64,000 nucleotides of DNA from Lepidodermella squamata (Eukaryota; Animalia; Gastrotricha). Location: NCBI GenBank assembly GCA_047495785.1, contig JBLDXI010000001.1, forward strand, positions 1,922,001 to 1,986,000, given 5' to 3'. The position numbers and the translations under genes were made by a program. Numbering within the stretch: the first letter of the stretch is position 1; each line of letters opens with the position of its first letter. Positions 213 through 30,559 of the stretch are shown here, in pieces. The notes beneath the pieces are model-generated. The model saw only the letters and a program-made list of their open reading frames with translations, ran no database searches and was not told where the DNA came from.

Positions 213-503
213 ATGGCGAAGGAAAGATCGTTAGCGAAGCTCGATGAAATGCAGTCTAGCTTATTCCGTCTAATTCAAAAGTCAGGTTTGGATGATACGA
301 TTCGTTCTTTTGCCGTCGAGCAGGTGAAGGCGATCAAATACTTGCGCGAGCTCATCGATCGGGAGTGGCCGGATGCTGCTAAGATTGCTGGCGGCTACAA
401 CTTCGAAATGACGCCTGAAAATTCCTGCCCCATTTGCCTGAAAACTATCTCACGGAAACGCGACCTGAAGCGGCACATTGCCACGGTTCATACACGTAAA
501 TAA
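213..503 (+). CDS. Mini zinc-finger protein (helical N-module + 1 C2H2)
   Basis: Intronless 96-aa ORF; finger CPICLKTISRKRDLKRHIATVH; N-terminus resembles the next gene (MAK..., EQVKAIKYLRELI..W.D, YNFE...NSCPIC). Confidence 0.8.
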   Translation: MAKERSLAKLDEMQSSLFRLIQKSGLDDTIRSFAVEQVKAIKYLRELIDREWPDAAKIAGGYNFEMTPENSCPICLKTISRKRDLKRHIATVHTRK

Positions 504-732
504 ATTTGGGACCATACTCGGGGTGGAAGTCAATTTTCTTAAGTATTGTTGAATGGAGTACGCTGAATTTTTCATGGAAAATGATTGCAATTTCATCTCT
601 TTTCGTAAATAAATCTATAATCGTAAATGAATGAAAATTTCGAACTTGCTGATTTCAGTTTCATTTTTAATATGGCGACATGATTGGAGGGTTTCAAATT
701 TTTTAGACTTTAAAGAGTGGCTAAATCCCTCA

Positions 733-1199
733 ATGGCGAAAGCAAAGTGCTTGAAATTAGTAGAATCGATGAGATCTTCCATGACGAATTTGATGATCGA
801 ATCTGAACTGAAGGAACCCGACATGCGATGTCCGCACGAACCAGCCATAACGAAGCAAGTCGAAATGCTCAAACAGCTTGAACACGAAATTTCGGCGAAT
901 TGGGCTGATCCAACTGTTCCTAAAACGAAACGTAACCACGCTTTTCCAGGGGTAAAGAAATGGTGTTGCATCTTCATTTCAATTTGTTAGTAGTAGAAAC
1001 TGTTTCCTACGCTTTTGAGAACTTGGCTGAAAACGTTTGTCCGGTCTGCGGTCTTGAAATGAAGAACAAATTGGTCGTGAAGGGACACATGGAGGCTCGT
1101 CACAATCCGAATCCGAAAAAGTTCCAATGCGACAAATGCGAAAAGTTCTATTTGTTTTCTGGAAGCTTGTCTAATCACAAAAAGAGCGCTCATCAGTGA
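733..1199 (+). CDS. Mini zinc-finger protein (helical N-module + 2 C2H2)
   Basis: ATG 733; phase-1 intron 932-990 joins ORFs 631..990 and 960..1199; fingers CPVC...HMEARH and CDKC...HKKSAH. Confidence 0.8.
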
Positions 1200-1280
1200 C
1201 GACTTATCGATTATATTATTTATCTAGCTGTTCTCCCGATTATTTTTAGATTCTCTATTTAATCTAAGGCAAAGTGAACA

Positions 1281-1996
1281 ATGTCAGGTAAGAAAAATCT
1301 AATTTATTAGGGTTGGATGTAGCATTTGTTATAGGCGATGAGCTGAATCGTGACGAAACAGCCCTGCAGGCTATCGATGATATCGGGCAGGGCTGCCTTG
1401 GAATAATGGAAAGCCTCTCCGCAATCGAATCAGGCCTAGAATCATCGATTCAAAGGCGCCTTATCCTCGAAACCCTCACCTCTCAGCTCATGAAAGTTGA
1501 GTACCTGAAATCCTACATAACTCGTAATTCGTTATTATAATTTCTGCTCTTGAATTTTTTGTTCCTTTTATCAGATGTGATGGGTCGTAAGTCAGCAACT
1601 GGTAAACTTATTCACAACTTGACAAACAAGGTTTTGACGAATGGCGTTGTGAAATCGAATCGCGGCCGGAAACCTAAGCTAATATTGCCCGCGAATTTAC
1701 CTCTGGCTCCGTTACCTCCTCTAAGTGAATCTTCAACAAAATCCCATAACCCAACTCCGAATCCGTCTGTTGTCCCGTCGGTGGAAGTTATAACGATAGA
1801 CGATGATGTGACTAGCAGCAGTACTCCGACTTCGAAAGCTTCGTCATCGGTGAAGTCAAGTGGAACTAGCTTAGTCTCATCAAATAGTGCCACTCAGTCT
1901 TATCCGACGGTATTTGCCTGCCGATTATGCCCTTATTTCTATTGCTCGAAGAAGGATTACGCGCAGCACGTTGAAATTGCCCATGCAGGTGGATAA
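1281..1996 (+). CDS. Zinc-finger protein with helical module, AT-hook-like RGRKPK, SIM-like VEVITIDDD, 1 C2H2
   Basis: Introns 1288-1334 and 1524-1574 (GT-AG, phase 1) join ORFs 1313 and 1550 in frame; finger CRLC...HVEIAH. Confidence 0.8.
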
Positions 1997-2098
1997 ATTG
2001 GTAATTGGTGATGTCTTTGTTCCGTAGTAAATTCATCTGTTTCTCACGGGAAAAGGATCTGATTCTTGGGAAATTTTAGGTAGAGCATTATCAAATTG

Positions 2099-2613
2099 AT
2101 GACTGATTTTAAGCCCATCAGCAAGAAATCGAAGATTCTCGGGATATCTCACGAGATCGAAAGCAGCAACATCAGTTTATGGAACATGTTCGAAGTGCCT
2201 GGTAAGAAGAATGTCCTGGAAGTTCGTGGCTTTTTAATCACGCAAGCCGAACAAATTCGAGCTCTTCGAGAGCAAGTTGAAGCTTTGGAAGACTATGATT
2301 TCCGCATTGGTTAGCAAACTTTCCATTTTACTGATCCTAATTTTCAAAAAATAAATTCTTAGAGAATCCGTTCCTATGCAAAGTTGAGACTCCCGAAGAT
2401 GACGACGTGTGCCTGATAGTCGACCCTCCGACTTTACCAGCTAAAAATTCCAGTGTCACCCCGGTAAAGCCAGCACCCATCCCGGTCAACACACCTACTC
2501 CGGTCAAGTCTCCTACCCTAGCTTTTCCGACGAAAAAACGGTGCGAATTCTGTCCGGCGACCTACTCGGACCCGTCCACGCTTCAGAAGCATGTCGCCCG
2601 TGTTCACGCTTAA
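2099..2613 (+). CDS. Mini zinc-finger protein (helical module, SIM-like DDDVCLIVD, 1 C2H2)
   Basis: Intron 2310-2362 joins ORFs 2096 and 2407; finger CEFC...HVARVH. Confidence 0.8.
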
Positions 2614-2757
2614 AACAAAAACTTCGTTTTCGAAGATTGATTTCTAATTTATAATTTTGCCCTGATTTTGCTCTAAAATATCGTGGAAATCCCTTAATTT
2701 TTTTCTAGCTAGAAGCTGAAAACTGAATAATTTTTCTAATAATCGAAAATTTGAAAC

Positions 2758-3267
2758 ATGAGCGGAGAAAGTAATTTTCGGTCCCAATTTTCGATGACGT
2801 TCCGAAATTCTCGTTTTTCAGAGCTGGTGAAAAGTTCCCAGGTATTGCAGGAATATGCTGGTTTGATTTCGATTTGCAAGTCGCTGAGCAAATACTTGAG
2901 AGAGGTTGCACATGACCCTAACGCTGTGGAACGCGCCGCTGAGAATTTCGCAAGGAAACTGTCTCCTCACGCCCAACTCATCGAACGATGCCGCAAAGGA
3001 TCTTCCCTACGAAAACACCATCAGGATTCAATTTCGAAGGTTGCTAAATCCGTCAGTGAAACCGAGCGTAGTTCGTCGATGGAATGCGCCAAGTGCCCGA
3101 TTTGCGACAAGGTACTGATGAAACGCAACATGCGCGATCATCTGGCTATGCACGAAGCTGACCCGCCGAAATTCGTCTGCAACAGGTGTCAACAGGTCTT
3201 CCGCCGGCGTCGAAGTCATCTCAAACATTCGGTCAAATGTAACGCTCTGATGGAGCTTGACGATTAA
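2758..3267 (+). CDS. Zinc-finger protein (C2H2 + C2HC)
   Basis: 169-aa ORF; CPIC...HLAMH, then CNRC...HSVKC. Confidence 0.8.
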   Translation: MSGESNFRSQFSMTFRNSRFSELVKSSQVLQEYAGLISICKSLSKYLREVAHDPNAVERAAENFARKLSPHAQLIERCRKGSSLRKHHQDSISKVAKSVSETERSSSMECAKCPICDKVLMKRNMRDHLAMHEADPPKFVCNRCQQVFRRRRSHLKHSVKCNALMELDD

Positions 3268-3328
3268 ACTGACTCTTTCGGGTTGATTTACTTCTTTTTC
3301 CTGTGTAGATTTTGATTAGAAATTCTAA

Positions 3329-3843
3329 ATGGCTGAAGGTCGACATTCTAGCAAGCAAATATTGAGGATGCTGGACCTTTTGGAGGTCGAGTCAAAGACT
3401 CCGATTTCGCTCCGCCCTCCAATTGTCCAGCACTATTTGGGTAGAGCTTGAGACATTTTAGACCAAAAATAATTGTGTTTTTGATAGTATTAAAGGAAGA
3501 ACGAGATGCGAAACTTGCTTTGAAAAATGCGAAGGTCGAAGCCCAGAATGAGGACGTTACTGATTTGCCAGAAATTGATGACGACTGGTTTTTCGAATCA
3601 GAAAGATTGCCTGCTACCCGCAACCTCCGACTTCCACCCCCGAAGCGCTACCATCCGTGTATTCACTGTACGAACTCGTATCGTTTCCCTTGGCAGGTGA
3701 AACTTCACCAGGAAGAAAAACACGATTTGTGGAGCTTGCTGTTCAGCCTTGACTGCGGAATGAGTTATGATTTCTTGAAGAAAGTTGACCGAAAACGACG
3801 ACGAGCCCCTTCTCCCATTCCTATCTATTCAGTGAACTGGTAA
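3329..3843 (+). CDS. Mini zinc-finger protein (1 C2H2)
   Basis: ATG 3329; intron 3441-3487 joins to the ORF 3448 frame; finger CIHC...HQEEKH. Confidence 0.75.
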
Positions 3844-3882
3844 CTAGTTTCTCTTCCCCCTGTGTTTTTTAGATTGTTACTA

Positions 3883-4340
3883 ATGGGATCGAACCCTGCT
3901 GTCGAATTCACTGACCTAGTTTCCCAGCTGCGGAAGATGAATTCCAACATGAATGAGCAGCTATCAAGTAAAATTTCGAAGCGATTTTACTGAATAATTT
4001 ACCCTGTAATCTAGAGTATCTAGCTGCTGCGCCGGTTTTCAGCGCTTTCACCGAGTATCTATCCTGTGAACTCGAAGTGATCAACAAGATGGAAGTAACT
4101 CATGGTATAGTCGCCTCTAAACTTGTCACGTTATTGGACAACGTGAATAAGCTGGAGGCGGGGAAGGCCAAGCCTGTGTTAACCGCGAAACAAGCTGTAC
4201 CGAACCCCGCTGTTAAGGAGGAGCCATCTGAAAAGATCCCCTGTGAACTGTGTCATAGAGAGTTTTCTAGCAAAGAAACGTTGAAAAAGCATGTTAACAG
4301 ACTGCATGCTGAACTCGAATTCCAGCCAACTTACATTTGA
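3883..4340 (+). CDS. Mini zinc-finger protein (helical module + 1 C2H2)
   Basis: ATG 3883; intron 3968-4014; finger CELC...HVNRLH; SUMO consensus VKEE. Confidence 0.78.
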
Positions 4341-4381
4341 TACTTGAATGCAATGTTTTTTTTTATTGGAGAATTTAAAAA

Positions 4382-4693
4382 ATGTCATCATCTAACGCCC
4401 ATTACGAGAAAAGGATTGCTGAACTCGAAGCTGCTAATTCCGCGTTGAAAATTGAGGTTGAGCAATTACGTAAAAAAATCGGATCTTCTGGCGATTCGCA
4501 TTACGCTTTTGCTTCCACGGCTGCCCTGCCGCCCAACGTTTGCCCCATTTGCAATGTTGCTGCTTCGAGTGCGTACAGCCTGAAGAGCCACATGTTCCTA
4601 CACGATCCCGTTCCACGATTTTCTTGCAAGAAATGTGGTAAGAAGAGCCGCCAGCCTCAAGGTCATCGAGCTCACGAACGTAGCTGTAAATGA
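4382..4693 (+). CDS. Coiled-coil + 2 zinc-finger mini-protein
   Basis: Heptad repeat IAELEAANSALKIEVEQLRKKI; CPIC...HMFLH-DPVPRFS-CKKC...HERSC. Confidence 0.85.
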   Translation: MSSSNAHYEKRIAELEAANSALKIEVEQLRKKIGSSGDSHYAFASTAALPPNVCPICNVAASSAYSLKSHMFLHDPVPRFSCKKCGKKSRQPQGHRAHERSCK

Positions 4694-4820
4694 TTGAAAA
4701 CGAGACCTTAGCGGAAACATTCATCAATGCTCACCATTTTCTATGGTTTATCATAATTTTTGTTTTTTTTCGATTAAAATTTGTATTAATAGAAATTACT
4801 AAGTCATTTGAAGGCAATCA

Positions 4821-5135
4821 ATGAATCCTGAAATTGAGAACTTACGGAGGGAGAATTTCGAACTGAAGGCAATCATCGAAAGGTTGAAAACAGAAAACAG
4901 CGCTCTTCTCGCCAAGTTGGGTTCAACGACTAATTCGGAGACTTATTCGTTCGCTCAGCCTCCCAGCTTGCCGGCTAACACGTGTCCGATTTGCAGTGAA
5001 AAGCTTGGAAGTGCCCCCAGTTTGAGAGACCACATGTTTCGGCATGACGCTGTGCCGCGATTTTCCTGTGATGACTGCGGTGTGGCTTTTCGCCAGGTTC
5101 AAGGATTAAATAGACACCGCCGCAACAAGCATTAG
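4821..5135 (+). CDS. Coiled-coil + 2 zinc-finger mini-protein (paralogue of 4382)
   Basis: Heptads IENLRRENFELKAIIERLKTENSALLAKL; CPIC...HMFRH-DAVPRFS-CDDC...HRRNKH. Confidence 0.85.
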   Translation: MNPEIENLRRENFELKAIIERLKTENSALLAKLGSTTNSETYSFAQPPSLPANTCPICSEKLGSAPSLRDHMFRHDAVPRFSCDDCGVAFRQVQGLNRHRRNKH

Positions 5136-5201
5136 ATGAATTTTTCATAATCGATGAACTGAGCTCAATAACCTGCCTCAATGTCTTGTGATCTAATTTA
5201 G

Positions 5202-5522
5202 ATGACCTTGCCTGAAGATCGTATATTAAACCTTGAAGTATTGCTCTGTCAACAATCGACAAGAATTCGTGACCTGGAGAACAAAATTAGCTCCATATTG
5301 AATGATAACGAAAGATTCATGTCAAAAATCATTGTTCAAGTCGAATGGGCTGTTAGCGAGATCGAAATTCTCTCGAAGCGAATTAATGCCATTCGCCAGA
5401 TCAGTGAGAAGGTTTGATGGTTATGTCACATTGTCCCTCTCATATTTGTCAATAATTTATTTTAGGAGGTCTTGTTATCTTTGTTGCCAGATAAGGAGGA
5501 AATGCTATTTTCGTTTCGATGA
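5202..5522 (+). CDS. Small coiled-coil protein, no finger
   Basis: Heptad pattern; phase-0 intron 5412-5465 adds EVLLSLLPDKEEMLFSFR*. Confidence 0.6.
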
Positions 5523-5824
5523 TCAATAATCTATTTTCTACTTTTTACATTCATCCTATTTTTACTTGAAACCTCAACTTTTTTGTTGATTAAAATTGCA
5601 GATATGCAAAATTGAAAAATGCCGATCACCTAATTATTGAAGTTCAAAAGATTCTGCTGGTTTCATATTATCCTATTTCGACGCCAAGCATTCAGAAATT
5701 CCCATATGAAATCAGCTGAATCTTTTTTTGCTTCGAAAACGAAGAGTTTGGCTTCTTTGAATTTTGTGCTTCGGGTTCATTAGGTTTTTTTTCGGGATTT
5801 TGTATTAATTTTTAGCTCGAACGA

Positions 5825-6132
5825 ATGAGCTTGTTGCAGTCTACTGATATTCGGTACGAGATAACAATCATGCGATTGAAGCAGCAGAATGCGAAACTCG
5901 AAGGTCAGGTAGCCGCTCTGGAGCAGCGGTTGGCGGACGCCTCCGCTGTTTTCGATCGATTAGCAGCCATTTTAGCCAACGTCTTTGAGGTAGATCAAGT
6001 GCAAGATGAAGTAAGTCCTAGCTATTTATTCATTTATTCTTGACATTTTGTATTATAATTTCCAAGGTGAAGATCGAAAAAGAAGATTTGCGAAAAGCTG
6101 CGATGCGTGAATTGCCCAAGGACCTCGAGTAA
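5825..6132 (+). CDS. Small coiled-coil protein, no finger
   Basis: LKQQNAKLEGQVAALEQRL; intron 6011-6066 (gtaagt...ccaag); last exon VKIEKEDLRK...DLE*. Confidence 0.65.
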
Positions 6133-6345: not shown

Positions 6346-7622
6346 TCACATGGTAATGTTTATGAAAACAATGATGTAGATCGTCAAGGATCCTAATCCA
6401 GTAAGAATGGCGAATGCCAGATCGATCAGGCGGATGAGTTCCATACGGAGTAGTTTCTTGTAGTGCCAGCTTAGCGTGACGTCTACTACTTTCCTGAAGT
6501 CGGACCATTGAGATAGCAGATTTGAAACTAAGGCATAAAGAGTGAAGACCACTGAAATAACAAAATGGCTCGAAACGAAAACGAGAGCATTAGGAATCTG
6601 GCTAGAGCTTGGAATGAGGCTTCCTACGATCGACTGATAGACGGAAAAAGCGAGAACAACTGTCACGCAAAATGCTGGTCGGTCAGGGACATCCGGCTGA
6701 AGCAGAAGGGCCCCGAACAGGAGACTCAGCAGGCAGAAACATGGCAAAAATATGTTGATGAGGTGCAGACTGGACCGGCGTCTGATTACAAAGTAGAACA
6801 CAGCTCTGTGGTAAGTTTTGTTGGGAGCATTGGCGTATTGAACTGGTAGAAAGTTCGAGCCCGATTCTACCAGGCTCCAGTCGTTCACTTCGCTCATGAA
6901 AGGATAATCTACGTCGTCTTCGGTGACGGCTAGCTCGACCGATGTCAGCACGTTGTGCCTTGTATTGTACCATGTTTCTAGCTGGACAGAACAGTTTTGG
7001 ACATCATATGGAAATTTTTCCAAGCTGAAAAATATGCATTAAACTCCATATTTTATCGAAATTTTGAACTCTAGTCTTACTCTAATGGGCAGTACGAGGT
7101 GAAAAAGCCCACTGTCCTAAGCAGGACCTGGCCATCGCTGTAAAAGCGGGTGAATTGTTGACCCGTATAGAGGTTTTGCATTAGCATTGAGTCGGCTGAA
7201 TTAATGTGCTCCATAGGTGGCTGATACGTGTTTGAAATCGGCACCAAGAAGGAGGGTATGTCGTTCCAGTCCGATGTGTTCCATCTTACGCAAGGGTGGT
7301 TCCATCGCAGATTGAATTCTGATGCTAGAGAAAACGTCTCTTCCTGCTCGTTCAAGTTGAGTAAACGAAGCGGAATGAAGGATATTTCAATTGACATTGG
7401 CTCGCTTGCATTGGTCGGCCTGTCGAGCTCGTAGATACCGCATTTGCTTGCAAAGTGGTATCTCAACTAAGGAAAGAAAAATCAACCGGGATTAGGAAGC
7501 TAGTACTGACAATTTTCCCTCACCCTTCCTTCCGGCGGTATGTAGTTTGTCTCGCCTTGAGTCGAAGTTGCCATGATGACTGCAGTCATTAAGATGAAAA
7601 ATCCAAGCGTCACAGAGCTCAT
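6346..7622 (-). CDS. Cys-loop ligand-gated ion channel subunit, nAChR-like non-alpha (copy 1)
   Basis: Signal peptide exon MSSVTLGFF...YIPPEGR; Cys-loop YCPL-x-LEKFPYDVQNC; four TM helices; 3 exons. Confidence 0.92.
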
Positions 7623-7781
7623 TTTTGCTTTTCAATGCTGCCTTGCAGCTTTGATAGCTATGAGCTGGTGTTCGTGGAAAATTATTTCAACTCTCTGGTT
7701 TCCGCTTTCATAGATTTTCGAAGCAATATTCTTGAGCGAAATCAAATAAATTCCATAAATATATCGAATGTAATATCCCTA

Positions 7782-7819
7782 CACGTGAGTCCTCACGTAA
7801 CTGACGTCAGCGTGACGCA
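7782..7819. promoter_or_regulatory. Cluster of ACGT-core sites (E-box CACGTG, palindromic CRE CTGACGTCAG) upstream of LGIC copy 1
   Basis: CACGTG 7782-7787; inverted repeat acgtgag/ctcacgt 7783-7798; ctgacgtcag 7801-7810; ~160-200 bp upstream of the ATG. Confidence 0.4.
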
Positions 7820-8541
7820 ATTATTGTTATTCGCCTATGTTCCATTGCCATCGCAGTTGAAAAATTGAAGGTGGTGTGAGAAGAAAGTAGAAAGGAAAAA
7901 AGGAGAATGACTAACTTGACCTCGCTCCAATGCGCCTTCCCGAGAAGTAGCGAGTGAAAATTATGAGAAATTTTAACTTAATAGGGAAATATTTATTTAA
8001 AAGCTTTGGCATTGGCTTTGGAACTGGCTCGAGCCATTCGGTATTTATTACTGTCTACTATGACTTGCAATAAGGAAGTAAGCCCCGGCTCCCCGGCTCT
8101 TTCCTATTTCCAATGCGTCACAACAGACCTAGTCTTAAACCATAGCGATTTAAGACGAAATCACACAATTTTCGAGTTGTATACGCATTTTTCCGCTCAG
8201 GTTCCAGCCAAATGTTATGAAACTTCGAAGAGAAGTGCTCTGAATGCCGGGAATTATTTCGTCCGAATCTTGCGCATTTCTAGCTTTTAAAATGGGAAGT
8301 CAAATTGTTCATGGCGAATGGTCTTGTGACTTGTGACCTCGTTGGCTGCGTCACGGAGCCTTTATTTCAGTACCTTCAAAGTCTTAGCCTGTTAAATAGT
8401 TGTTATTTCATCAGTTAGTTGTCCTCTTTTTTTAAAGAAATATATGCACAAGCAATTGCCAAATGTTTACAACCAGTGTTTACAATCAGGAATGCTTGCT
8501 TGATGGAGGAATGGTAGAGAGAAGTCAAATCGGATTTCGTG

Positions 8542-9805
8542 TCAAATCATAAGATTGTTGAAAATAACTGCATAAAGAGCAATGGATCCCAGGCTAGCCA
8601 GCGTAGAGAATGCGATATCTGGAAGTCGAATAAGCTGCATAGGAAGCGGCAGCTTGATACGACAAAACGGCAGTACTTCAATGGTCTCTCGGTATCTTGG
8701 CCTCAGTGATAGTTCATTCGAGATCAAGGCATAGAGCGTGAAGAAAACTGCGATAACTAGGTGGCTTGCGACAAAAATCAACGCATCGGGTACCTGACTC
8801 GAGTTCGGAATCATTTCTCCAACTATTGACTGATAAACTGAAAATGCGAGGACAACCGTAACGCAGAAGGCTGGCCGGTCTGGCGCATCTGGCTCCATCA
8901 GCATTGCCCCAAAAAGCAGGGTCAATAAGCAGAAGCAGGGTGCGAAAATGTTGATGAGGTGCAAACTCGGGCGACGTTTGATTATGTAGTAAAACGCTAC
9001 TCTATGATAGGTTTTATTCGGACTGGTTGCGTACTCGACGTTGAGAAAGTTGTAACTCGACTTGATCAGAGTCCAGTCGTTCACGTCACTCATGAATGGG
9101 TAGGCTGCATCGTCCTCAACGACCTGATATTGAACCGAATTGAATATCATGTTCCGTGTATTGCGCCATGTTTCGAGTTGTATTGAACAATTTTGAACGT
9201 CGAATGGGAATTTCTCTAAGCTGAGAAGCATAGGAGATAACTTTTGTCAATTGCTTTATTCAGCGATGATGCTTACTTCAATGGGCAGTACGAGGCGAAA
9301 AAGCCAGCTGTACGTAATATAACAGAGCCATCGCTGTAGAAACGAGTGAACGGCTGTTCTGCATACAAATTCTGGAGTAGCATCGGATCCGCGGAATTGA
9401 CGTGCTCGATCGGAGGCTGATAGGTTTGCTCCACTGGTATCACAAATGATTGTATACCGTCCCAGTCTGAAGTGTTCCACTGCACACAAGGATGCTGCCA
9501 GCGTAGGTAAAGCTCGGAGGTGACCGCGAAAGTTTCCTTCTGCTCATTTAGATTGTAGAATCGCATTGGCAGGAAGGTTATGTCTATAGCTGTAGGTTCG
9601 CTTGAATTCGTTGGGCGATCCAACTCGTAAATGCCGCATTTTGTTCCGAAGTGATACCTGACCTGCCAATTTATTAAGATCCGTTCAATTTTCGAAGTAC
9701 GGGAAACGTGCATTTGTCTCTTACCCGACCTTCGGGGGGCATGTACGATAATCCTGCGAGGCTGAACGAAAGTACCAAAATCAAAGGCAGTATCGTCAAG
9801 TTCAT
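8542..9805 (-). CDS. Cys-loop ligand-gated ion channel subunit (copy 2)
   Basis: MNLTILPLIL...YMPPEGR; Cys-loop ...FPFDVQNC; M2 DRPAFCVTVVLAFSVY identical to copy 1; same intron positions. Confidence 0.92.
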
Positions 9806-10180
9806 TGATTCAACAGCTTGCGGATAAAATTGGACAGAATCTGAAATCAAGGTTGAACGCTCCAGCTTTATTAATATCATTTTTTCGTGGTTCCCGGATA
9901 TTAACGCAACGAAGCCTGCGCAAAAATATATCTCTATTGAATGATTGTTCAATATTTTATTGATTTTTGATACTGTTCTTCAATATGGATGAGATGTAGA
10001 TGTTCCTCGAATTATCTTTTCAAAATCGGATAATTTAATGCACCGAGGCCTAGAAATCTCGCTATGGAGCCCTTGATATGAACAAGATTTACAAGATCGT
10101 CATCGCAAAAACTGGTCAATGTGACTTGGCTGAGTTAAAAGCAGGACTTTCTTTTTCTGAAGGTCGAAGCTCGAAGCAAA

Positions 10181-11617
10181 TTATCGACCAGACATTGAAC
10201 AAACAAAACCTAAGCTCGTGCCATTGCCAGTTGAAATGTATATTACGAGGCGTTTGAAGATAACGGCGTAGATGATTATTGATCCTAAACTGGCCATGAT
10301 CGAAAAAGCCACATCTATCAAACGTACGAGTTCCAAGTTGATCCGTGGATGATCATTATGTTCCAATGTATCCGCGTCCGTTCCGCGCCCAGGTTCATTC
10401 AGCCAAATTATTTCAAATTGAACTGGTTTCTTTAATTCAGATTTATGGGACAGCACATTGGCCATCAGAGCATGAAGCGTAAATAGGACAGCAATCACAA
10501 AATGGCTCGATACGAAAATCACCGCATCAGGAATCTGGCTGGAACTTGGAATCAAGTTTCCAATAATCGAAAGATAGACGGAAAAGGCGAGAACCACTGT
10601 AACGCAAAATGCCGGCCGATCAGGAACCTTTGGTTGCAAAAGCAGCGACCCGAAAAGAAGAATTAACATCAGGAAACATGGTAGGAAAATGTTGATCAGG
10701 TGTAAACTCGCCCGGCGTCTGATTACGAAGTGAAAAACTGCTCTGTGGTATGTTTCGTTCGGAGAATCGGCGTATTGTATTGGTAAGAAATTTGCATACG
10801 AATTTAAGAGGCTCCAATCGTTTACCTCGCTGATAAAGGAACCAATCTCGTCCTCTAGGAATTCTATCTTAACTGATGTATATATGATGTACTTCGTGCT
10901 GTACCAGGTCTCCAGCTGGGGAATTATGAATTTGTAAAAGCTCTGAAAAATCTCGGCGAAAAGCTTATACCTGTATAGAACAGTTTTGGACATCGAACGG
11001 GAACTTTTCCAAGCTTAACATTGAAAATTGTTAGATTATTCTGTAAACGGGATCGTTTGAATCTTACTCAAGTGGGCAGTACGAGGTGAAAAGCCCAGCT
11101 GTGTGCAGGAGAACAGAACCTTCGCTGCTGAAGCGAGTGAATTGCCGATTAGGGTAAAAGTTCTGCATCAAGATCGAGTCGGCAGAGTTGATGTGCTTAA
11201 TCGCTGGTTGATAGGTTTGTGACGTTGGTACTGTGAAAGAGGATATCCCGTTCCAATCTGAATCTTTCCATTTAACGCAAGGGTGGCGCCATCGGAGATT
11301 TAGATCCGATGCTACAGTGAAGGTCTCCCGCTTCTCGTTCAAGTTGTGGAAATTAAACGGAGTCAAGGTTATTTCGACCCGAATTGGCTCGCTGGAATTG
11401 GCTGGGCGGTCGAGCTCGTAGATTCCGCATTCACGGGCGAAATGGTTCCTCAACTGTGAAAACGGAAAATAGTTTCATTCGCTCGACGGAAAAGCTGATC
11501 TCGTACCCTTCCTTCTGGTGGTATGTAATCTGACTGGCTATCGGTCGAAAATACGTTCGAAGTCTCTTCGGCGAAATAAATCAGAGTAATTACTATGAAT
11601 GATTCGAGCGGTTTCAT
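10181..11617 (-). CDS. Cys-loop ligand-gated ion channel subunit (copy 3)
   Basis: MKPLESF...YIPPEGR; same architecture as copies 1 and 2, plus an extra intron 10916-10970. Confidence 0.9.
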
Positions 11618-11991
11618 TTTTGATTCTCCATGCCTCCGAAGTTCTGATACTAGGTAGTTTAACAGTAGTCATATAGATAGCTCTAGCAAATTGTTTTGTC
11701 TTCGATTCGGAGCACGAGTTGAGGAAATTGGAGTCTGGCCAATGTTTAATCGAATGTTATATTATTATTAACGTAGCCTTATTTTTTCGGCCCATCGGAT
11801 ATTAGTGTTTCGGTCAAAAACAAGCTGATATTTCGCGCTGAGTTGAAAATAAGCTATCCTCAATTGAGTACACTCGAATGCGAGTTCGGCTTGTACTAAC
11901 TAAGACTAATGTTTTGACTTCTGGTTATGACTTTGATAGGTCCCGTGTTAAATTTTTACAAAGAAATAGACGCATCTCCGATCCTTCTGGC

Positions 11992-12627
11992 ATGTATCTA
12001 AGGAAAAGGAAAGCAAAGGACTGCTCAAATCAGTCTCCGGCCACTCGAAAGAAATCGCCTGACTCAAACTCTCATGTCCCTTGTTTTCTATGTAAAAAAT
12101 CTGTCCCAACTCGCCTTGACTTGGTTCGTCATGTCAGAGTGGATCATCAGCCGGACCCTAATGTCGAAGAGCCTGTCAGAAAATCTTGGCTCTTTTGCGA
12201 AAAATGTGACCAAAAGTGTAAGAATGTTGCCGAACTGAAACGTCATAATGACATCGTTCATGAGCGTAACGCTCCTCCGTTGTCTTGTCCAGATTGCGGC
12301 AAAACTTCGTCGGTATTGACACGTCTAAGATCACACATCGCGAGATCACATCGGCCGATAAAACGCCGAAAATGCGAAGAATGCGTCAAGTCATTCGTTG
12401 ACACAAATTCGCTATGGAAGCATCGATTACGTTTTCATGCTCCGAAGCAGGAATTTCCCTGCCAGAAGTGCGATAGAATACTGAAAACCAAGCTAGCTCT
12501 AAACACTCATGATCGAACAATGCATTTGAACGAAATTCTCCGTCGATGCTGTTTCTGTTCTATGGCGTTCAGACACCAATCGAATCTTACAAGACACGTG
12601 AAACGGCAACACATTCAGCGCAAGTAG
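11992..12627 (+). CDS. Multi-C2H2 zinc-finger protein (6 fingers)
   Basis: Repeated CxxC...HxxxxH in ORF 11878..12627; likely ATG 11992 (MYLRKRK). Confidence 0.88.
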   Translation: MYLRKRKAKDCSNQSPATRKKSPDSNSHVPCFLCKKSVPTRLDLVRHVRVDHQPDPNVEEPVRKSWLFCEKCDQKCKNVAELKRHNDIVHERNAPPLSCPDCGKTSSVLTRLRSHIARSHRPIKRRKCEECVKSFVDTNSLWKHRLRFHAPKQEFPCQKCDRILKTKLALNTHDRTMHLNEILRRCCFCSMAFRHQSNLTRHVKRQHIQRK

Positions 12628-12945
12628 GCTTGGTCAATCTCGGAAAGTGGCTCGTAACTTCGAGTTTGAATTTCGGCTTGAGTTCAGTGTTTGATACCGT
12701 GGAAATGGTCTTCGAAAAGCAGCAGTTGTCTATTTCGAACGGGAAAGTGCGGGCTGATTCAATCATATTTTCAACTTTTTTTGATGATTATTCCAAGCTC
12801 ACAAATGAACTCTTCAGTGATATATCGAGCACAAATACCAACTTTAGGTGGAGAGTTGCTCTTTTGAAAATGTCATTTTATGTCTAGAATTGAAAGTTGA
12901 GCAACTTGTGCGAAATTTTATTTTTGAACTTCAGTTGCTTTCAAA

Positions 12946-13809
12946 ATGTTCATACGCTGCACTAAATGCAACAAGAGTTTCGCTTCATCGAAGCTATTGA
13001 AGGGCCATATGAAAATGGTTCATGCCCCAATGAAGCTTGATTCTGCGAGTTTTGCCTCGTCGAAGCTAGTGAAAGACCATACGAAAACGGTGCATGCCCC
13101 AACGAAGCTTGAACCTGGGACAATTTCAGAAAGAAAAACACAACCTAAGTCGTTGAAACGTCGTCTTCCATGTGATGAGTGCAACCGAATGTTTCCAAGC
13201 CCGGCCGATTTGAGTCGTCATAAGTCCATCACTCACGAAGGCAAAAGCTCGAAAATTCGTTGTGGGATATGCAAAGCTAAGTTTGACTGTCTGGAAAGCT
13301 TGAGAAATCACAAGACGTACAAACACACAAATAACGTTATAAGACGCAGCTGCAAGTTGTGCTCGAGAAAGTTTCGAAGTATTCGTGACGTTCAACGTCA
13401 CGTCGACATATTTCATAAAAAAGCGGCAGCTCCTCTTAAATGCCAGCATTGCCCGAAGACTTACGATAACAGGAACTCTCTTCTCACGCACTCGTTGAAA
13501 AAACATAAGGAACCGCGTCGTTATCAGTGTTCGTATTGCCCTGGAAGCTACAGCGACTTTTCAGGGTTAGCAAAGCATCGGCGGCGATTTCACTCGGATT
13601 TACCGCCGATTGCCTGTAAGCAATGTGACCTGACATTCCTCAACCGGCCGCAGTTTTTGAGCCACATGCGAATGCTGCATCGCGAAAAACAACAGAAGTG
13701 CGATGTATGCGGCAAGACTTACTCGTGGAAATCGACCCTGTGGAACCACAAGAACCGATGCCATACGCCCTTGTCGCCCAGAAAAATTGTAAAATCGGAG
13801 CCAGAATGA
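12946..13809 (+). CDS. Multi-C2H2 zinc-finger protein (~8 fingers)
   Basis: Intronless 287-aa ORF with tandem C2H2 fingers; C-terminal VKSE SUMO consensus. Confidence 0.9.
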   Translation: MFIRCTKCNKSFASSKLLKGHMKMVHAPMKLDSASFASSKLVKDHTKTVHAPTKLEPGTISERKTQPKSLKRRLPCDECNRMFPSPADLSRHKSITHEGKSSKIRCGICKAKFDCLESLRNHKTYKHTNNVIRRSCKLCSRKFRSIRDVQRHVDIFHKKAAAPLKCQHCPKTYDNRNSLLTHSLKKHKEPRRYQCSYCPGSYSDFSGLAKHRRRFHSDLPPIACKQCDLTFLNRPQFLSHMRMLHREKQQKCDVCGKTYSWKSTLWNHKNRCHTPLSPRKIVKSEPE

Positions 13810-14049
13810 AAAACTAAATTTTACTCGAATTTACAAACTGTATTTTTTTGTTTCGGAGCCTCTCCCGAATTGCATCAACACGGATAGTGTTTATTTGGGA
13901 TTGCAATGCGTTGTTTTTTTTATGAATCTATTATTTTTTAATTTATCCATAATCCGATGGACATCACTTCGGACTCAGTATAAAGAATAAATCAGACTGG
14001 GAGGGTTGAATTTTTCCGTTTCCCTTTTTATTTTTTAGATACGTTTTTC

Positions 14050-16014: not shown

Positions 16015-16826
16015 ATGAATTACGGTAGGAAAAGTTTGGCATAGCGCCAATTTTAATCCTCTCTTGACTTTTCAGAGCAGTACCAGCGAGATCTTTTGCA
16101 ATTCGTCGGTCAGCTGGACAACTTGAATGAGTCGATAACTCAAACAATCGCCGGTCTGTAAATTAATCGAAGATTTTAATATCATTATTTTTTTTAATTT
16201 TTCAGCCGCTGCGAGTTCGAATCAGCCGCAACCGATTTTAGCGCTCTGTATGAATCAGTTGATTTTTCAGAGCGGCCTCATTCGGTTTTTGACGCAAAAA
16301 ATTCAGCGTACTACGTTCAGCGATTTTGCTGTCAATCGTTCGTTTTTTTTGTCCTGATTTTACTCGACATAATAATTTATCAACCACTACAGAACCGCCA
16401 CTTGCGCTGTCTGCTGTCGATAATTTGTTGCCCCGTAATATTTTCGACCTGATGCAAGCGTCGGCGAAAAGCAAAGAAAATGCTGTTTCCGCCGCGAGCA
16501 AAACCGTGAATCAGGCCGAAGACAATATTCCACTCATCCCGGTTATAGCTAACAACAACAGCGCGAGTAAGCTGCCCTCTATCAACACGATATTGCGTCC
16601 TGGTCAGTCGACGCCGTCTGTTTCACCAGCCCCGCAGCCACTTACCCCCGGTGACTCGATCGGCGCATCGCCGGAATCGAACGCGGAAGGCCAGAAGAAA
16701 CGCGAATTGCGCGACGCCGCGGTCGATGCGCGTCAGATTTGCGATTTGTGCGAGAAAAATCTGCCCACATTGGAACTCTTAATGCGCCACTACGAAAAAG
16801 TTCACAATGTTTCATTTTCTAATTGA
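16015..16826 (+). CDS. Helical-module + 1 C2H2 protein
   Basis: Introns 16025-16075, 16154-16205 and 16308-16392 give an open frame; finger CDLC...HYEKVH. Confidence 0.72.
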
Positions 16827-17532: not shown

Positions 17533-18213
17533 ATGAGAAAAATGGCTCGAAAGACACATTACCATCAACAACATTCTGGCAGAAGGCAGAGTTATTCAAA
17601 TCAAAGAAATCGTGGGGCTGTAGGTCAATCGAATCGGCAATATTCCGGAGGGTATCATCAGGAGAACTCCTATCAAGAATATTTTGAGCGCCCAACTCCG
17701 CAGCACGATTACAATGTCAACTTCAACGCAGTTAGAAGGCCACAACATTTTCGAGGTTGGTCAATTTTTTTAATAATATTTTTATTTAAGGTGGATTTTT
17801 TATAATTTTTTATAATCTCCTGAAATTATTCCTAATTTTCAGATCAATACTCTGCCAATCCCCCGCCGGCTCTTGATGCTAATGTCTATCAGTTATGCCG
17901 AGAACTTGTGCGGAAAACCGAGGAAAATGCGCAACTTCGAGAGCTGTTAAAAGGCGCGCTCAGTCACCCGTCTGACCTGCGCCGCGAACTTGTCGAATCG
18001 CGCTACGACTCGCTTTATCGCCCGTCTCGGCTATCAACAAACTCAAATCAACCACGAAAACGAATCCAATCGAGACCCCAAAATTTCAGCCAGCGGAATG
18101 CGAGTTATCGAAATCAGCGGAACAGAGGCCGTCAAAATTATAGACGGAATCAGGGAAATGGCGGATCGAAACGTGGCTCAGAACACGAGTGCAAATTGGA
18201 GAAAGTTTATTAA
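17533..18213 (+). CDS. R/G/Q/N-rich low-complexity protein with central coiled coil
   Basis: Intron 17756-17842 joins ORFs 17530 and 17908; SYxNQRNRG occurs near both ends. Confidence 0.65.
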
Positions 18214-21163: not shown

Positions 21164-22245
21164 ATGCTTCGAAAAGTGCCGTCGAGAGGTTGCTTAAGGC
21201 GCGAGAAAGAAGATTTCACTTTTATCAAGGCGAAAAGTCTGGAAGTTCTAAAAAGTGAGTGAGTTTTTGGTTCGAATTGAATTCCCATATGATGTATTCA
21301 ATCATCCAGGTTTTTCCTCCTCGATTTCCCGGCGATATGACCAGGTAGGGTCGTTGATTAGTATCGTACAACTTTGCGACAGGCGAAAAAGCGAGCTCGA
21401 AGGCCCACGAGCTGCTCTTAAAGGAAGCAGTTCAGGATATGAAATGAAAAAAGAAATTGCCGATATTCGTAGTATTGATCTGGAGATAATAGACATTTCG
21501 GATGAGTCGGAAGGAGAACATGAAAGAAACCTAGTCGCTGACGCGGCGGTTCACCCGGAAAGCACTGATCCCAGCGAAGAGGACCTTACTACTCATCACG
21601 TAGAACTTGGAGGAGCTGTTGTTGACGGTATTCGAATTCCTCAAATTTTGCACGAGAAATTAGGGATTACTTAGTTTTAGCAAATTTGCAGCCGGCGGTT
21701 ATCAAAAAAACAAAACGTTCTCGGGGCCGCCCCAGAAATGTCATGGCCGAAACGAAAAAGCGACGTCGCCGATATTCTAAAACTAGTCCGAAACGTCGCC
21801 TCTCTGCAAAAGCTGGTGAGTAATTTCATCGCGACCCTTCTCGAATTTTACCTCGATATGTCTAGAATTGGTGGTCTTTCCAGGCGAACAAATTCGTAAT
21901 GTCGTAGTCAAACCAGAAAACGCCGAAAAAAGCAACAACGACGAAAAGGAGAAAGGTTATAATATTCCACTTCATAGCGATTCTCTGAGTTCAACTGATT
22001 CTATAATAGGAAATGCGAAAATTTCCCATTTCAAGGAATTTGGGCCGAACAAGGTTCAGTGCAATAATTGCGGGCGTGTGATATCAAAAAAGGCGAAGGG
22101 TCATCATCTTATTCGTCATGGCCTATCCCGGAATAATGCGATAGAATGCGATAAGTGTGGATCAGTCCTCGGGTCGTTGTCTTCCTGGTACCGGCATTGC
22201 AAGATAGGATGCCAAAAGCCTGACAATTCAACATCTCTTTCTTAA
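21164..22245 (+). CDS. Zinc-finger protein with SIM-like motif, AT-hook (RGRPR) and 2 fingers
   Basis: Multi-exon; LEIIDISDESE; KRSRGRPRN at ~21715-21740; CNNC...HLIRH and CDKC...HCKIGC. Confidence 0.75.
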
Positions 22246-22299
22246 CCTGTCCATAAATTTGAGATTTTATGGACAACTTATAACAGACTTCTTCGGTTT

Positions 22300-22600
22300 A
22301 TTTTTTACAAGTCTTGACACACATCACCGTCTAATCAGCCTGGATTCGATATGACAATACTATGCTGATGGCTGATTTATCGGGGTTTTCGAGGTCGACA
22401 TTTTTTTTAAATTCACCGTAATTTAATATTTCTTAACTCGTCACCCCTCGAAATAGCGACGAGGATGTGAATTTGATCTAACGGAATGAAGGTATTGAAT
22501 AGTAAGCCTCTCGTTTGATTTGCTATGAAAATACTATGCTGATAGTTGATTTATCGGACTTTTCGAGTAATAGGTCCTATGGTCGAAACAAACTTACATT
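22300..22600 (+). pseudogene. Decayed partial copy of the gene starting at 23858
   Basis: ttacaagtcttga vs ttacatgcctga (ATG lost); cacccctcgaaatagcgacgaggatgt...aaggtattgaatagtaag matches exon 1 and the donor of the 23858 gene but contains a stop. Confidence 0.6.
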
Positions 22601-22697
22601 GCTAGATCCGATTGAAACAATTTGCTCTGTTATTTTGCGCATATCTTTTTTCTTTTTTTCCCAATTTAAGATTGTTGAATCCCATCAGTGTTTCTTA

Positions 22698-23731
22698 ATG
22701 CTTCGAAGGGGGGTTTCTAGAGGTCCCTTGACGGTAAGACTCGAAGAAAAAGATTTGAATTATATAAGAGCGGAATGCCTAAAGGTGCTGGGAAGTGAGT
22801 TTTATTACTTCGCCTATGTTCCCATTTGATTTATTCAATGCCGCAGCTTTTTCGGCCTCGATTACCCGTCAGTACGAGTATGTCGGGTCGTTGGTCAGTG
22901 TCGTTCAACTTTGCGACAGGCTCCACCGCGAGTTCGAAGAGCGACGAGCTGCTCTTGAAGATAGCAGCTCAGAAAATGAAATGAATGAAGGGCGCGAAGA
23001 CGCCCCAGCTAACACTGCCGAGATTTCTGAGGAATCTGAACCGGAAGGCGCAAGCGAAGTAAGTCTTGTTAGTGATGCTGTTGGTCAAGCCGATCCTAGC
23101 GAAGAGGACCTTACTGCCCATGTTGAACTTGGAGGAGCTGGTATTCGGATTTTTTGCGTCTGAAATGAGACATCAGCGATTTGTGTTTGGCAGCTTATGA
23201 GCCTGTTGTTATCAAGAAGCCGGTGGCGAAACCTTCTAAGGGCCGCCGCAGAGCAGTTATGGTGAAAAAGCGACGTCGTCTTAATCCTAAGACAATTCCG
23301 AAACGTCGCCGCATTGCAAATGCTGGTAATTTTCCGAAATTCCGAATTAATGAAATTCATTCTTGCTAGTCTTTTCAGTCGAAAAAGTTGATAATGTCGT
23401 AGTCAATCCAGAAAGCACTGAAATTCCACGTCTAGATGACGCAATCAAGGCTGAGAGCGGAAAGCAGACAGGTTTAATCATTCGATGTGATTACAAATCT
23501 TTGACTGTTCCCAACTCCATAACAGGAAGCGAGAACATGTCCCATTTCAAGGAAGTTGGGCCGAAAAAAGTGCAGTGCAACATTTGCGGGCTTGCGATTG
23601 GTTCAAGGTCGAAGGGTTCTCACCTGATTCGACACGGCCCTGCGCGGAAGTACACATGCGATAGTTGCGGGAAACAGTTCGGTTCGCCGTCATCGTGGCA
23701 ACGTCATTGCCAGAAAGGCTGTCCGGCCTGA
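22698..23731 (+). CDS. Zinc-finger protein, tandem paralogue of the 21164 gene
   Basis: Shared blocks VGSL.S.VQLCDR, DPSEEDLT, SHFKE.GP.KVQCN.CG; same intron positions. Confidence 0.78.
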
Positions 23732-23857
23732 CAATTCATCAGCTAAAACCTTGTTTTTAATGCACTTGCGACTTCGTACAATTTGAACACTGTAAATATT
23801 TGAGATTTTATTGAATAATTATACCGTTAAAACAGAGTTCATCGGTTTATTTCTTAC

Positions 23858-24770
23858 ATGCCTGATTACATCACTCCTCGGATCAGCGAGGAAGAGGTAC
23901 ATTTCATCCGGAATAACGCGCTTAAGGTATTGAAAAGTAAGTCTTTCGGTGGGTTTCATACGAAAATACGAAGTTGAGTTTCTTCAGGTTTTTCGAGTAA
24001 TATGGTCAAAAATTACAATCAAATCGGGTCGCTAGTCCGGGCTGTGGAACGCTGTGACTCAATATTGGCGAAATTCGCGAAGAAAAATGTTTCCTTCAAC
24101 GAAGAGGTTGAAGTATCGACTTTTGAACCAGTCGAGCAGTCTCTCGTTGATATAACTGATGATGACGATCCTAAAATCAACATGTTGTTGATACCTAAAA
24201 TTCGCAAGCGGGTGCGTAATCGGAGAGCTGTAAATCGCAAATTAGTGGAATCAGGTTAGTTGTAACTTATCGGAAATCTTAATTCTTACCCACCGCTGAT
24301 CATTCAGATGATGAGCTGTTATCCCGTCACTGGAATAATCCCGAAATGGTTGTCGTAGGTCCCGCTTTCAGCCTAAAATCTACCCGATCTAAACCAGGTA
24401 ATTTTTAGGTGGAATTTTTGTTCCATTGGCTGGCTTTGGCTTCGTATAAGTCAATTGATGAATGGCTAAAATGTCAGAATTTGCGAATGAAAATTGATTT
24501 GAAACTCGTTTTACCCAGCATCTGCTCAACTTGAAACGTTCACTACATTTAAATGTCATTTAAGGTGCGCCCCAGGTTGAGGAAAAAGTTGCCTCCTCGG
24601 CAATAATTGGATGTAATATCTGCGGTCGAATTCTGTCGTCTCGGACTAGCCTGTTCAATCACATGAGGCTACACGACAAGACCCCGCGTTTCAAGTGTCG
24701 TAGCTGTGGCAAGGCCTATTATCAGAATCAGTCGTTGCGCGTTCACAACCGGAGACCTTGCAGCAGCTGA
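23858..24770 (+). CDS. Zinc-finger protein (related N-module, SIM-like LVDITDDDD, 2 fingers)
   Basis: NYNQIGSLVRAVERCD; last exon (not in ORF track) CNICGRILSSRTSLFNHMRLHDKTPRFKCRSCGKAYYQNQSLRVHNRRPC. Confidence 0.72.
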
Positions 24771-28705: not shown

Positions 28706-28776
28706 AAAGAAGATATTTAATCTATTACGAAAAATGACTGTTTACCATGAAAATTAGATATTATTTCACTATTGCT

Positions 28777-29550
28777 ATGGAATTGATCTTGGATGATATT
28801 CGAAAACGGAAGGCTGGTATTCGCTCTGTTTTACCCACCATGCCCCTATTGAGGTGTTACAAACAGCTTCAACACGTGAACAGCGTTCTGTATTTGAAGC
28901 TTCAATCCGGTGAGTCATTTTCTCCTTGAATTGTTATTTCAATATTTTTTTATTTTCAAGTGGTTGACCTTGAGGGCAATCGGCTGCCAGAGTACACTAA
29001 TGCATTGAATTACCTATCAATGCAATCCGCCTTATTGTCCCAGCTAAAATACCGAGTCCCAGCGTTGTGTGAAGCGAAGAAACCGCGCCGTAGTAAATCC
29101 AACAACTCCGCGCCACCTATAGCCCAAGAAGTGGTGGTCGAATCAACCCCGGCCCCCACCCAGAGCCGCAGCTACATGGCCGATGCCATGTGCCCCACGT
29201 GCTTCAAAACATTCGCCCGCCGCGCCGATTCAATCCGCCACCAATTCACAGCTCATTGCGAAAAATTGACTCAAATCACGTGCCCGGAATGTCCTGGTCT
29301 GAAAATTCTTAAAAGCGTGCGAACTTATGAGATTCACATGCTTAAAATGCATGGAGGCACCAGTCAGGATTCGACCCAGGCCAAGTGCCCGGTGTGTAGC
29401 CTGGTTTTCCGCCGGAAAGCTAGTGTTACAATTCACATTCGGAATGCTCATAGGATGGTTACGGGTTCGAAATCCCAGTACCAGGCGGATAAGGGTTGCG
29501 ACTGCAAAAATTGCACATATGTCAGGGCTTTGATTGACGCATCGACTTGA
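28777..29550 (+). CDS. Helical-module + 3 C2H2 protein with terminal CxCxxC
   Basis: One intron ending at 28960; three fingers; tail GCDCKNC. Confidence 0.8.
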
Positions 29551-29594
29551 GTAATAAAAATAAGTTCAGTTTTTATAGAAAAATAATTTCCAAG

Positions 29595-30182
29595 ATGAAT
29601 CCAACAATTTTGAAGATGAAGCAGGTTATCAATTCGCTGATTAGCTTGCTGCAAACACCTGGCGCTGATACTTCGGACACTTATTTGAACCTCTGCATGG
29701 CTAATGTCCTCTACTTTCGCGATCTAGCTGGAGCTCTTGATGACTCATCCGCACCGTCATCATCAGCTTCTTCGCCGCAGATCAATGAACTCTCGACGTT
29801 GTGGCAGGATATTATGGAAAATCCTCGCCCGATTGAGGAAAATTCTGTTGGTGGACAGGCTGCTGAAATGGAAAAATCGGATCCTGAAGAGATGGCTGTT
29901 CGAGAAAGTCGATCTCTTCATGCCGTGGAAAAAGGTAAGAAGGCCGCTAAAACCCGCGTTTCTACTACATCGGATGCTGAGGATTTAGTCGTTCGGGAAA
30001 GTCGATCCCTTCAGGTCATAAAAGAAGCTAAACCAGCAGCTAAGAAGCCCGCTAAAATCCGCAAAGTTTCGAAGAAAAAACCTGTTGATGTTGACAAAAC
30101 TACCTGTAAGGAGTGCAACAAAACTTACGCCCAAGCTGGTGGTCTCAAGTACCACATGCGTGTTAGACACAACAGTCAATAG
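29595..30182 (+). CDS. Helical-module + 1 C2H2 protein with internal repeat
   Basis: LCMANVLYFRDL; VRESRSL repeated twice; CKEC...HMRVRH. Confidence 0.8.
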   Translation: MNPTILKMKQVINSLISLLQTPGADTSDTYLNLCMANVLYFRDLAGALDDSSAPSSSASSPQINELSTLWQDIMENPRPIEENSVGGQAAEMEKSDPEEMAVRESRSLHAVEKGKKAAKTRVSTTSDAEDLVVRESRSLQVIKEAKPAAKKPAKIRKVSKKKPVDVDKTTCKECNKTYAQAGGLKYHMRVRHNSQ

Positions 30183-30247
30183 ACAAATTGATTTTTTTCC
30201 GATAAAAAATTTTCTGATTTTTTTCGATTATTTTAGACGTAATTTTA

Positions 30248-30559
30248 ATGCAGTCAATTAACGCGAATAACATTCGAGACGTCGCTGATTCGTTGCTTCA
30301 CGCACTCGAATCCCCGGCTCGGCCGTTATCTTGCGAATTTTTCAGCCTTTGCCTAGCTCATGCCTTCTACCTGCGAGATTTAGTCGCTCGTTACGAAGAG
30401 CAAGAAATGCCTCCGATTTTGTTCAACGAGTCTATCCCTCTGCCGGAGAATTTGTTGAAGCAACAAGATTCTGCGACTAGTTTCTTCTGCCCACACTGCC
30501 CGACGAAATTCAATCGCAAATCTGACAGAACGCAGCACATAAAGCGGCATCATAAGTAG
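30248..30559 (+). CDS. Helical-module + 1 C2H2 mini-protein
   Basis: LCLAHAFYLRDL (homologous to the previous gene); CPHC...HIKRHH. Confidence 0.82.
   Translation: MQSINANNIRDVADSLLHALESPARPLSCEFFSLCLAHAFYLRDLVARYEEQEMPPILFNESIPLPENLLKQQDSATSFFCPHCPTKFNRKSDRTQHIKRHHK

Follow-up and report, generated by a model that had tools for sequence, protein, structure and literature searches.

Small C2H2 zinc-finger genes in an operon-like gastrotrich array carry diverse, putatively dimerising hairpin heads

We describe a run of small C2H2 zinc-finger genes in the gastrotrich Lepidodermella squamata, contained in a 64,000-nucleotide stretch of contig JBLDXI010000001.1 (assembly GCA_047495785.1, positions 1,922,001 to 1,986,000 of the forward strand; the whole stretch is called the window below). 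From window position 213 to 30559, the plus strand appears to hold a head-to-tail, largely operon-like array of such genes. The products of most of them would follow a common plan: an amphipathic helical head of about 50-80 residues, usually two helices joined by a Pro/Gly loop, then a linker of low complexity and one to three fingers, with a few finger-less members. We read this as a tandem, operon-like array of mini C2H2 genes whose hairpin heads diverge fast, fall into several families and are probably used for pairing; taken as a whole, this reading stands in our judgement about evenly between right and wrong. We keep the claim modest, since what the heads have in common is an architecture, and their sequences form several families that look unrelated.

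An earlier, sequence-only reading of the window had picked out nine second-helix peptides and assigned them to one lineage-specific oligomerisation domain of 55-65 residues, recurring at low identity in proteins with one or two fingers. All nine peptides are indeed there, on the plus strand (at 309, 844, 1472, 2231, 15753, 16256, 29011, 29691 and 30347), each in the N-terminal part of a separate small gene. The coordinates under which they had been cited (213, 733, 1281, 2099, 15567, 16015, 28777, 29595 and 30248) are the start codons (ATG) of these nine genes.

The array and its expression

In a motif scan of the window, 57 C2H2 matches fall on the plus strand from 426 to 30553; downstream of 30553 there are none. 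The C-x2,4-C-x12-H-x3-5-H motif and Pfam together place the array in the C2H2 zinc-finger family (PF00096), G15567 being without any finger. Pfam zf-C2H2 matches were obtained for G1, G5, G8, G28777, G29595 and G30248, several genes scoring slightly below the single-finger cut-off. Most fingers read C-x2-C-x12-H-x4-H: the H-x4-H spacing is found in 39 of 50, and this excess (about four fifths of fingers, versus the classical H-x3-H) extends to the head-less multi-finger genes at 11878-14715. A TGEKP-type linker occurs in none of the array fingers (426-30553, plus strand). The expected count of one or two fingers per protein needs two corrections: G15567 has none, and G28777 bears two clear ones at the least (29191 and 29386), with a probable third in between.

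Ten consecutive small genes occupy 213-5417 of the plus strand, with stop-to-ATG gaps of 229, 81, 102, 144, 61, 40, 41, 127 and 66 nucleotides; in many of them a pyrimidine tract and AG lie immediately 5' of the ATG. Three genes close the array (28777-30559, plus strand), spaced by 44 and 65 nucleotides. Judged from the letters of the genome, both groups look operon-like, with a layout as in trans-spliced operons. No spliced leader was seen in the array, and an Rfam scan of the window gave zero matches. One loose end in the complementary DNA (cDNA), at 2699 and without a preceding AG, was considered as a spliced leader and rejected: only 4 of its 15 bases differ from the genomic sequence immediately upstream, so that it is probably a diverged allele.

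The nine cited genes are real. In one public cDNA run, contigs carry a poly(A) tail and a SMART-type oligonucleotide after 627, 14-19 nucleotides past an AATAAA at 609-614. A further contig joins 1523 directly to 1575, confirming the second intron of G3 (1524-1574), which is the only RNA-confirmed intron among the inferred ones, and others span part of 5244-5631.

A DNA run contains a second haplotype, about 3% apart, beside contigs identical to the window (200-3436). Among the variants listed for G1-G5, the two haplotypes differ at 30 synonymous versus 5 non-synonymous codons, and 33 of 37 changes fall at third codon positions. The split between synonymous and non-synonymous changes is 5 to 2 in G1 (the latter both in the linker), 14 to 1 in G3 and 7 to 1 in G4. 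Within the N-terminal heads of G1-G5 it is 10 to 2, a ratio for which we regard the heads as under purifying selection today, despite the large differences between paralogues.

Predicted structure of the heads

AlphaFold2 models G1 (from a thin alignment with G2 and G4) as a helix at residues 2-22, a loop and a helix at 28-51, with a predicted local distance difference test (pLDDT) of 88-92. For G30248, modelled with G29595, the helices span 6-21 and 29-53, at a pLDDT of 77-90. The two models share an N-terminal helix, a loop of 5-7 residues and a helix, in about 52 residues altogether; the finger parts of both are poor, as expected without zinc. In agreement with the two models, the crude, heuristic Chou-Fasman method finds two N-terminal helical stretches with a Pro/Gly-containing break in nine of nine heads; for G3, whose helical N-terminus probably comprises three helices, it also points to the third. 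The two-helix shape thus stands for the modelled members and heuristically for all nine, with G3 the probable departure.

Superposition of the G1 model on Rop, PKN HR1b, designed heterodimer hairpins, Med7/Med21 and the histidine-kinase DHp gave root-mean-square deviations of about 2 Å over some 60 residues. In a Foldseek shape search of the PDB and the Atlas, the same model met generic hairpins only, none of them significant (best E=0.37). Its best superpositions, namely Rop, HR1b, DHp and the designed DHD heterodimers (0.9-2.5 Å over 48-66 residues), are antiparallel dimerising hairpins; they have no sequence relation to the heads, their Foldseek E is 0.37 or higher, and so simple a fold is matched by geometry alone.

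The hairpin is not the only head type in the array: G8 and G9 have leucine-zipper-like single helices, G10 a Shugoshin_N-like coil, and G7, and probably G3, three helices.

Sequence families among the heads

At E<=1, Pfam gave no KRAB, SCAN, BTB, ZAD or HLH match in the eight N-termini scanned (all nine but G16015), which agrees with the earlier view that the heads are none of KRAB, SCAN, BTB and ZAD. KRAB (PF01352) was set aside on this result. For ZAD (PF07776) we add that CxxC pairs occur in none of the nine heads, for SCAN (PF02023) that both models show only two helices in about 52 residues, and for BTB/POZ (PF00651), an alpha/beta fold of about 120 residues, that the modelled heads are all-alpha and fall well below this length. 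An assignment to bHLH/HLH (PF00010) was likewise rejected, there being no basic stretch before helix 1. Run on ten open reading frames (ORFs), Pfam found nothing beyond fingers and weak resemblances to coiled coils (Shugoshin_N, TMF_DNA_bd, bZIP), all below cut-off. The fingers of G1 and G5, and only the fingers, have weak sub-threshold matches to GAGA (E=0.004 and 0.0015).

Outside the window, no relatives of G1, G9 or G30248 came up in word-index searches of proteins, and a sequence search of the PDB gave no match below E=0.04. A profile of the G1, G2 and G4 heads, run against 1.84 billion representative proteins, had a single match (E=5.8e-4): three stretches of a 2954-residue HEAT-repeat NACHT protein, which we rejected as a helical-repeat look-alike. 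Searched by features in the ESM Atlas, G1 met only generic small C2H2 clusters, mostly archaeal and driven by the finger. By these searches the heads look lineage-restricted, as had been proposed.

Within the window, phmmer was run against 1216 ORF segments. It linked G29595 to G30248 (E=1e-6), G8 to G9 (E=2e-3) and G1 to G2 (E=0.03-0.04), and more faintly G1 to G4 (E=0.2) and, reciprocally, G1 to G29595 (E=0.5). The heads of G3, G15567, G16015 and G28777 had no phmmer match there and no link in the other tests.

A shuffle test covered 136 pairs of N-termini with Bonferroni correction. Its survivors are the three genes starting at 21164, 22698 and 23858 (pairwise scores 106-174, p<=4e-11), G29595-G30248, G1-G2 (p=2e-6) and G1-G29595 (Bonferroni 0.036); G1-G4 is borderline at 0.11. 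Reversed sequences, in which composition and helical periodicity are preserved, provide a stricter null. Nothing rises above it but the trio, G29595-G30248, G1-G2, G1-G4 (score 45) and G8-G11, and G1-G29595 only ties its maximum.

Significant pairs are confined to neighbouring genes; the members of each sequence family lie side by side, the pattern that local tandem duplication would produce. Recurrence at low identity exceeds chance for G1/G2/(G4) and G29595/G30248, that is for four to five of the nine cited heads, and not for G3, G15567, G16015 and G28777. Outside the nine, two more families are joined by sequence, 21164/22698/23858, clearly related and of the same architecture, and 4382/4821/5825 (G8, G9 and G11). 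On these comparisons the heads are at least four small sequence families plus several singletons, rather than one recognisable domain.

Traits shared across families

Besides finger type and adjacency, two traits cut across these families. We scanned the N-terminal 90 residues in 19 gene models for the generic heptad pattern h-x2-X-x3-h-x2-h-x3-h and found X to be Gln in 11 of 70 matches, against 3.0 expected (p=2e-4); this is a core position of helix 2. A Gln-bearing helix 2 is present in G1, G2, G3, G4, G15567, G16015, G28777, G22700 and G10. For a narrower Gln pattern, 10 of the 14 matches in the window fall inside the array. In placing a polar residue in the core, the heads resemble leucine zippers with their register-setting Asn.

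The other trait is intron position. Twelve of the 13 introns inferred at 932-29000 of the plus strand (in G2-G7, G16015, the 21164/22698/23858 genes and G28777) are 47-59 nucleotides long and in phase 1. Several lie between helix 1 and helix 2 in G16015, G28777 and the trio, and just past helix 2 in G3, G4 and G16015.

Origin and role of the heads

Could all nine N-termini, and others in the array, be one homologous lineage-specific domain, diverged past pairwise recognition and serving a combinatorial oligomerisation code? The same helix-loop-helix plan in the same place of adjacent genes argues for it, as do the core Gln in helix 2 of 9-10 genes, the uniform phase-1 introns and the weak bridge from G1 to G29595. 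That bridge, however, stays within the reversed-sequence null, the Gln motif is a short one that was in part picked out by eye, and G3, G15567, G16015 and G28777 stay unlinked. The profile-profile comparison set beforehand as the test of a single domain gave, with hhalign, a probability below 2% for every pair of subfamilies or singletons; significant similarity joins only G1/G2/(G4) and G29595/G30248, and the claim of one domain in all nine is not supported at this level. We consider this reading as a whole a real if doubtful possibility. Independent origin of the heads, with the genes related through their fingers only, we hold to be fairly unlikely. Amphipathic and coiled-coil helices arise easily, so that resemblance could be one of composition and periodicity; cross-family scores equal to reversed controls, the clearly different head types of G8/G9, G10 and G3/G7, and the multi-finger genes without such a head at 11878-14715 all fit this account. 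It leaves unexplained, however, the enrichment of Gln at one core position, the uniform phase-1 introns at helix boundaries and the recurrence of the same plan in adjacent tandem genes.

A different role for the hairpin is that of an effector or cofactor-docking element which, by KRAB-like logic, would recruit a shared co-repressor or SUMO-dependent machinery and not self-associate. Clusters of finger genes often carry effector heads, as known from KRAB, and several linkers between head and finger have a short hydrophobic core beside an acidic or Ser run, such as V-I-T-I-DDD or I-I-D-I-SDESE, in the manner of a SUMO-interacting motif (SIM). SIM-like motifs at 1787, 2395, 21486, 24143 and 25177 (plus strand), with weaker ones near 3570 and 28113, hint at SUMO-linked chromatin partners; the strict SIM pattern has seven matches in the window, four of them in these coding frames. 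Yet a surface that docks on a common partner is usually conserved, while these heads diverge strongly between paralogues, and Pfam has no KRAB match among them. Such a docking role seems to us decidedly unlikely.

Several points weigh against our own reading of a tandem array with pairing hairpins. Beyond the pairs named above, the remaining 127 cross-family pairs score like the reversed null (mean 23.9 versus 23.8, Mann-Whitney p=0.38), and the profile-profile comparison is equally silent. Hidden Markov models (HMMs) of three and five members, searched against all window ORFs, found no further member above reversed-database noise: the top non-member was G10 at E=0.27, with the reversed control reaching down to E=0.92 for the three-member and E=0.033 for the five-member model. 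A leave-one-out test of the remaining helix 2 positions is weakly positive (combined p=0.006), which may reflect helical composition. AlphaFold2 covers two members only, G1 and G30248, and a fold of just two helices is so simple that no functional weight can be placed on structural matches. The gene models themselves were built from reading frames and GT-AG sites, most of them without RNA confirmation. Since no sequence signal connects the families, the case for a common ancestor of all hairpins depends on their architecture and adjacency, on the intron phase and on a single weak motif. Conversely, the family profiles are shallow (2-3 sequences), and the lack of signal is therefore weak evidence of non-homology.

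Taking up again the reading of a tandem array with fast-diverging heads, we regard it as the most likely history that an ancestral 'hairpin + finger' gene underwent repeated local tandem duplication. Its hairpin would then have changed fast from one paralogue to the next, with purifying selection still acting on it in every single gene. By analogy with known systems, the most likely function is that two hairpins would pack into a four-helix bundle and give homo- or heterodimers; proteins of one or two fingers, once paired, could recognise a composite DNA site of greater length. Dimerisation of the heads is plausible on this analogy. The finger-less members could serve as competitors; by the same reasoning, G15567, G10 and G11 are possible partners or competitors of the fingered proteins.

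A bolder version would derive all heads from one lineage-restricted hairpin with a buried helix-2 Gln, forming selective four-helix-bundle homo- and heterodimers, so that the one- and two-finger proteins of an operon-like battery and finger-less competitors such as G15567, G10 and G11 together make up a combinatorial DNA-recognition code. We regard it as unlikely. If true, the code would stand beside ZAD, SCAN and bHLH/Id as a new solution.

Comparison with known systems

Clustered finger genes have repeatedly gained lineage-specific heads, the vertebrate ones being KRAB and SCAN and the insect one ZAD, and these heads decide pairing or recruitment. KRAB is a short N-terminal head of two predicted amphipathic helices, often on its own exon, in expanding clustered finger genes. 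Its sequence is strongly conserved and docks on TRIM28, whereas the heads studied here show no conservation across the array. SCAN is the all-helical N-terminal head of clustered vertebrate finger genes and forms selective homo- and heterodimers; with about 84 residues, five helices and a domain-swapped dimer, it differs from the two helices of the array heads.

The ZAD-C2H2 genes of arthropods resemble the array in having a lineage-specific N-terminal domain on C2H2 genes, expansion in tandem clusters and fast divergence. ZAD itself has about 75-90 residues, four zinc-binding cysteines and usually many fingers, unlike the array heads of about 50 residues, which are all-alpha, without CxxC and followed by 0-3 fingers. 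One published account (PMC7913770) describes ZADs as homodimerising, with heterodimers only among close paralogues.

The GAGA factor offers a likeness of another kind, being a one-finger protein that needs oligomerisation for strong cooperative site recognition; its head, in contrast, is a 120-residue BTB fold. In bHLH proteins, two helix-loop-helix copies form a four-helix bundle, and Id-type members without a DNA-binding part titrate their partners. The array heads are likewise helix-loop-helix, and the finger-less G15567, G10 and G11 would parallel Id. They differ from bHLH in lacking a basic region: DNA binding would come from the distant C-terminal finger, and the dimer is an analogy only.

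Next to these systems, the array would add a minimal case from a poorly studied invertebrate, a hairpin of about 50 residues with one or two fingers, some members being finger-less. If the hairpins dimerise selectively, they would be a natural test bed for how very short DNA-binding units gain specificity through pairing, and would also show how pairing codes diversify after tandem duplication.

Gene models and surroundings of the array

The gene models are collected in Table 1. The G16015 model, drawn from GT-AG sites and reading frames, places its first and second helices on separate exons.

Table 1 Features of the finger-gene array (window coordinates)
Feature	Position	Strand	Structure	Basis
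G1	213-503	+	single exon, 96 amino acids; hairpin 213-365 (residues 1-51), linker, one C2H2 finger 426-491	ORF, AlphaFold2, zf-C2H2
G1 poly(A) site	near 627	+		cDNA end
G2	733-1199	+	exons 733-931 and 991-1199; hairpin 733-903; fingers 1038-1103 and 1128-1193; closest paralogue of G1	
G2 intron	932-990, or equally plausible phase-0 alternative 952-1019	+		GT-AG, frame
G3	1281-1996	+	exons 1281-1287, 1335-1523 and 1575-1996; one finger 1919-1984	
G3 linker		+	Ser/Pro-rich, SIM-like motif at 1787	
G4	2099-2613	+	exons 2099-2309 and 2363-2613; hairpin 2099-2300; one finger 2542-2607	
G8, G9 (outside the cited nine)	4382-4693, 4821-5135	+	single leucine-zipper-like N-terminal helix and two fingers each	
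G10, G11 (outside the cited nine)	5202-5417, 5825-6043	+	finger-less coiled-coil mini-ORFs	
G15567	15567-15836	+	89-residue ORF, two predicted helices, no finger; stop 15834-15836; no Pfam match	
G16015	16015-16826	+	exons 16015-16024, 16076-16153, 16206-16307 (or to 16337) and 16393-16826; finger 16740-16805	
Trio outside the cited nine	21164-24256	+	paralogous finger genes starting at 21164, 22698 and 23858; helix 1, phase-1 intron, helix 2	
G28777	28777-29550	+	exons 28777-28909 and 28961-29550; phase-1 intron between helix 1 and helix 2	
G29595	29595-30182	+	single exon; hairpin 29595-29750, long acidic/basic linker, finger 30105-30170; paralogue of G30248	
G30248	30248-30559	+	single exon, 103 amino acids; hairpin 30248-30406; finger 30488-30553	zf-C2H2

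Finger-less helical mini-ORFs recur in the array, at 15567-15836 (89 residues), 5202-5417 (71 residues) and 5825-6043 (72 residues). In the trio, the first two introns of the 21164, 22698 and 23858 genes have similar 3' halves, the translation of which mimics a conserved peptide (FPYDVFN / FPFDLFN). Multi-finger genes without a head lie at 11878-14715 and from 27254 onward.

The window has a G+C content of 37-50%, about 42% across the finger-gene array, and its genome type is that of a compact, invertebrate-type eukaryote. A few non-finger genes also interrupt the plus-strand array at 213-30559. One further ORF in the array (17836-18210, plus strand), with neither a finger nor a Pfam match, begins as a coiled coil and has a tail rich in Arg, Asn and Gly, RNRGRQNYRRNQGNGG. 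On the minus strand, three tandem paralogues of Cys-loop ligand-gated ion channels (6346-11453, Neur_chan_memb match) break up the finger-gene array; their nearest ESM Atlas clusters, by language-model features only, are nematode.

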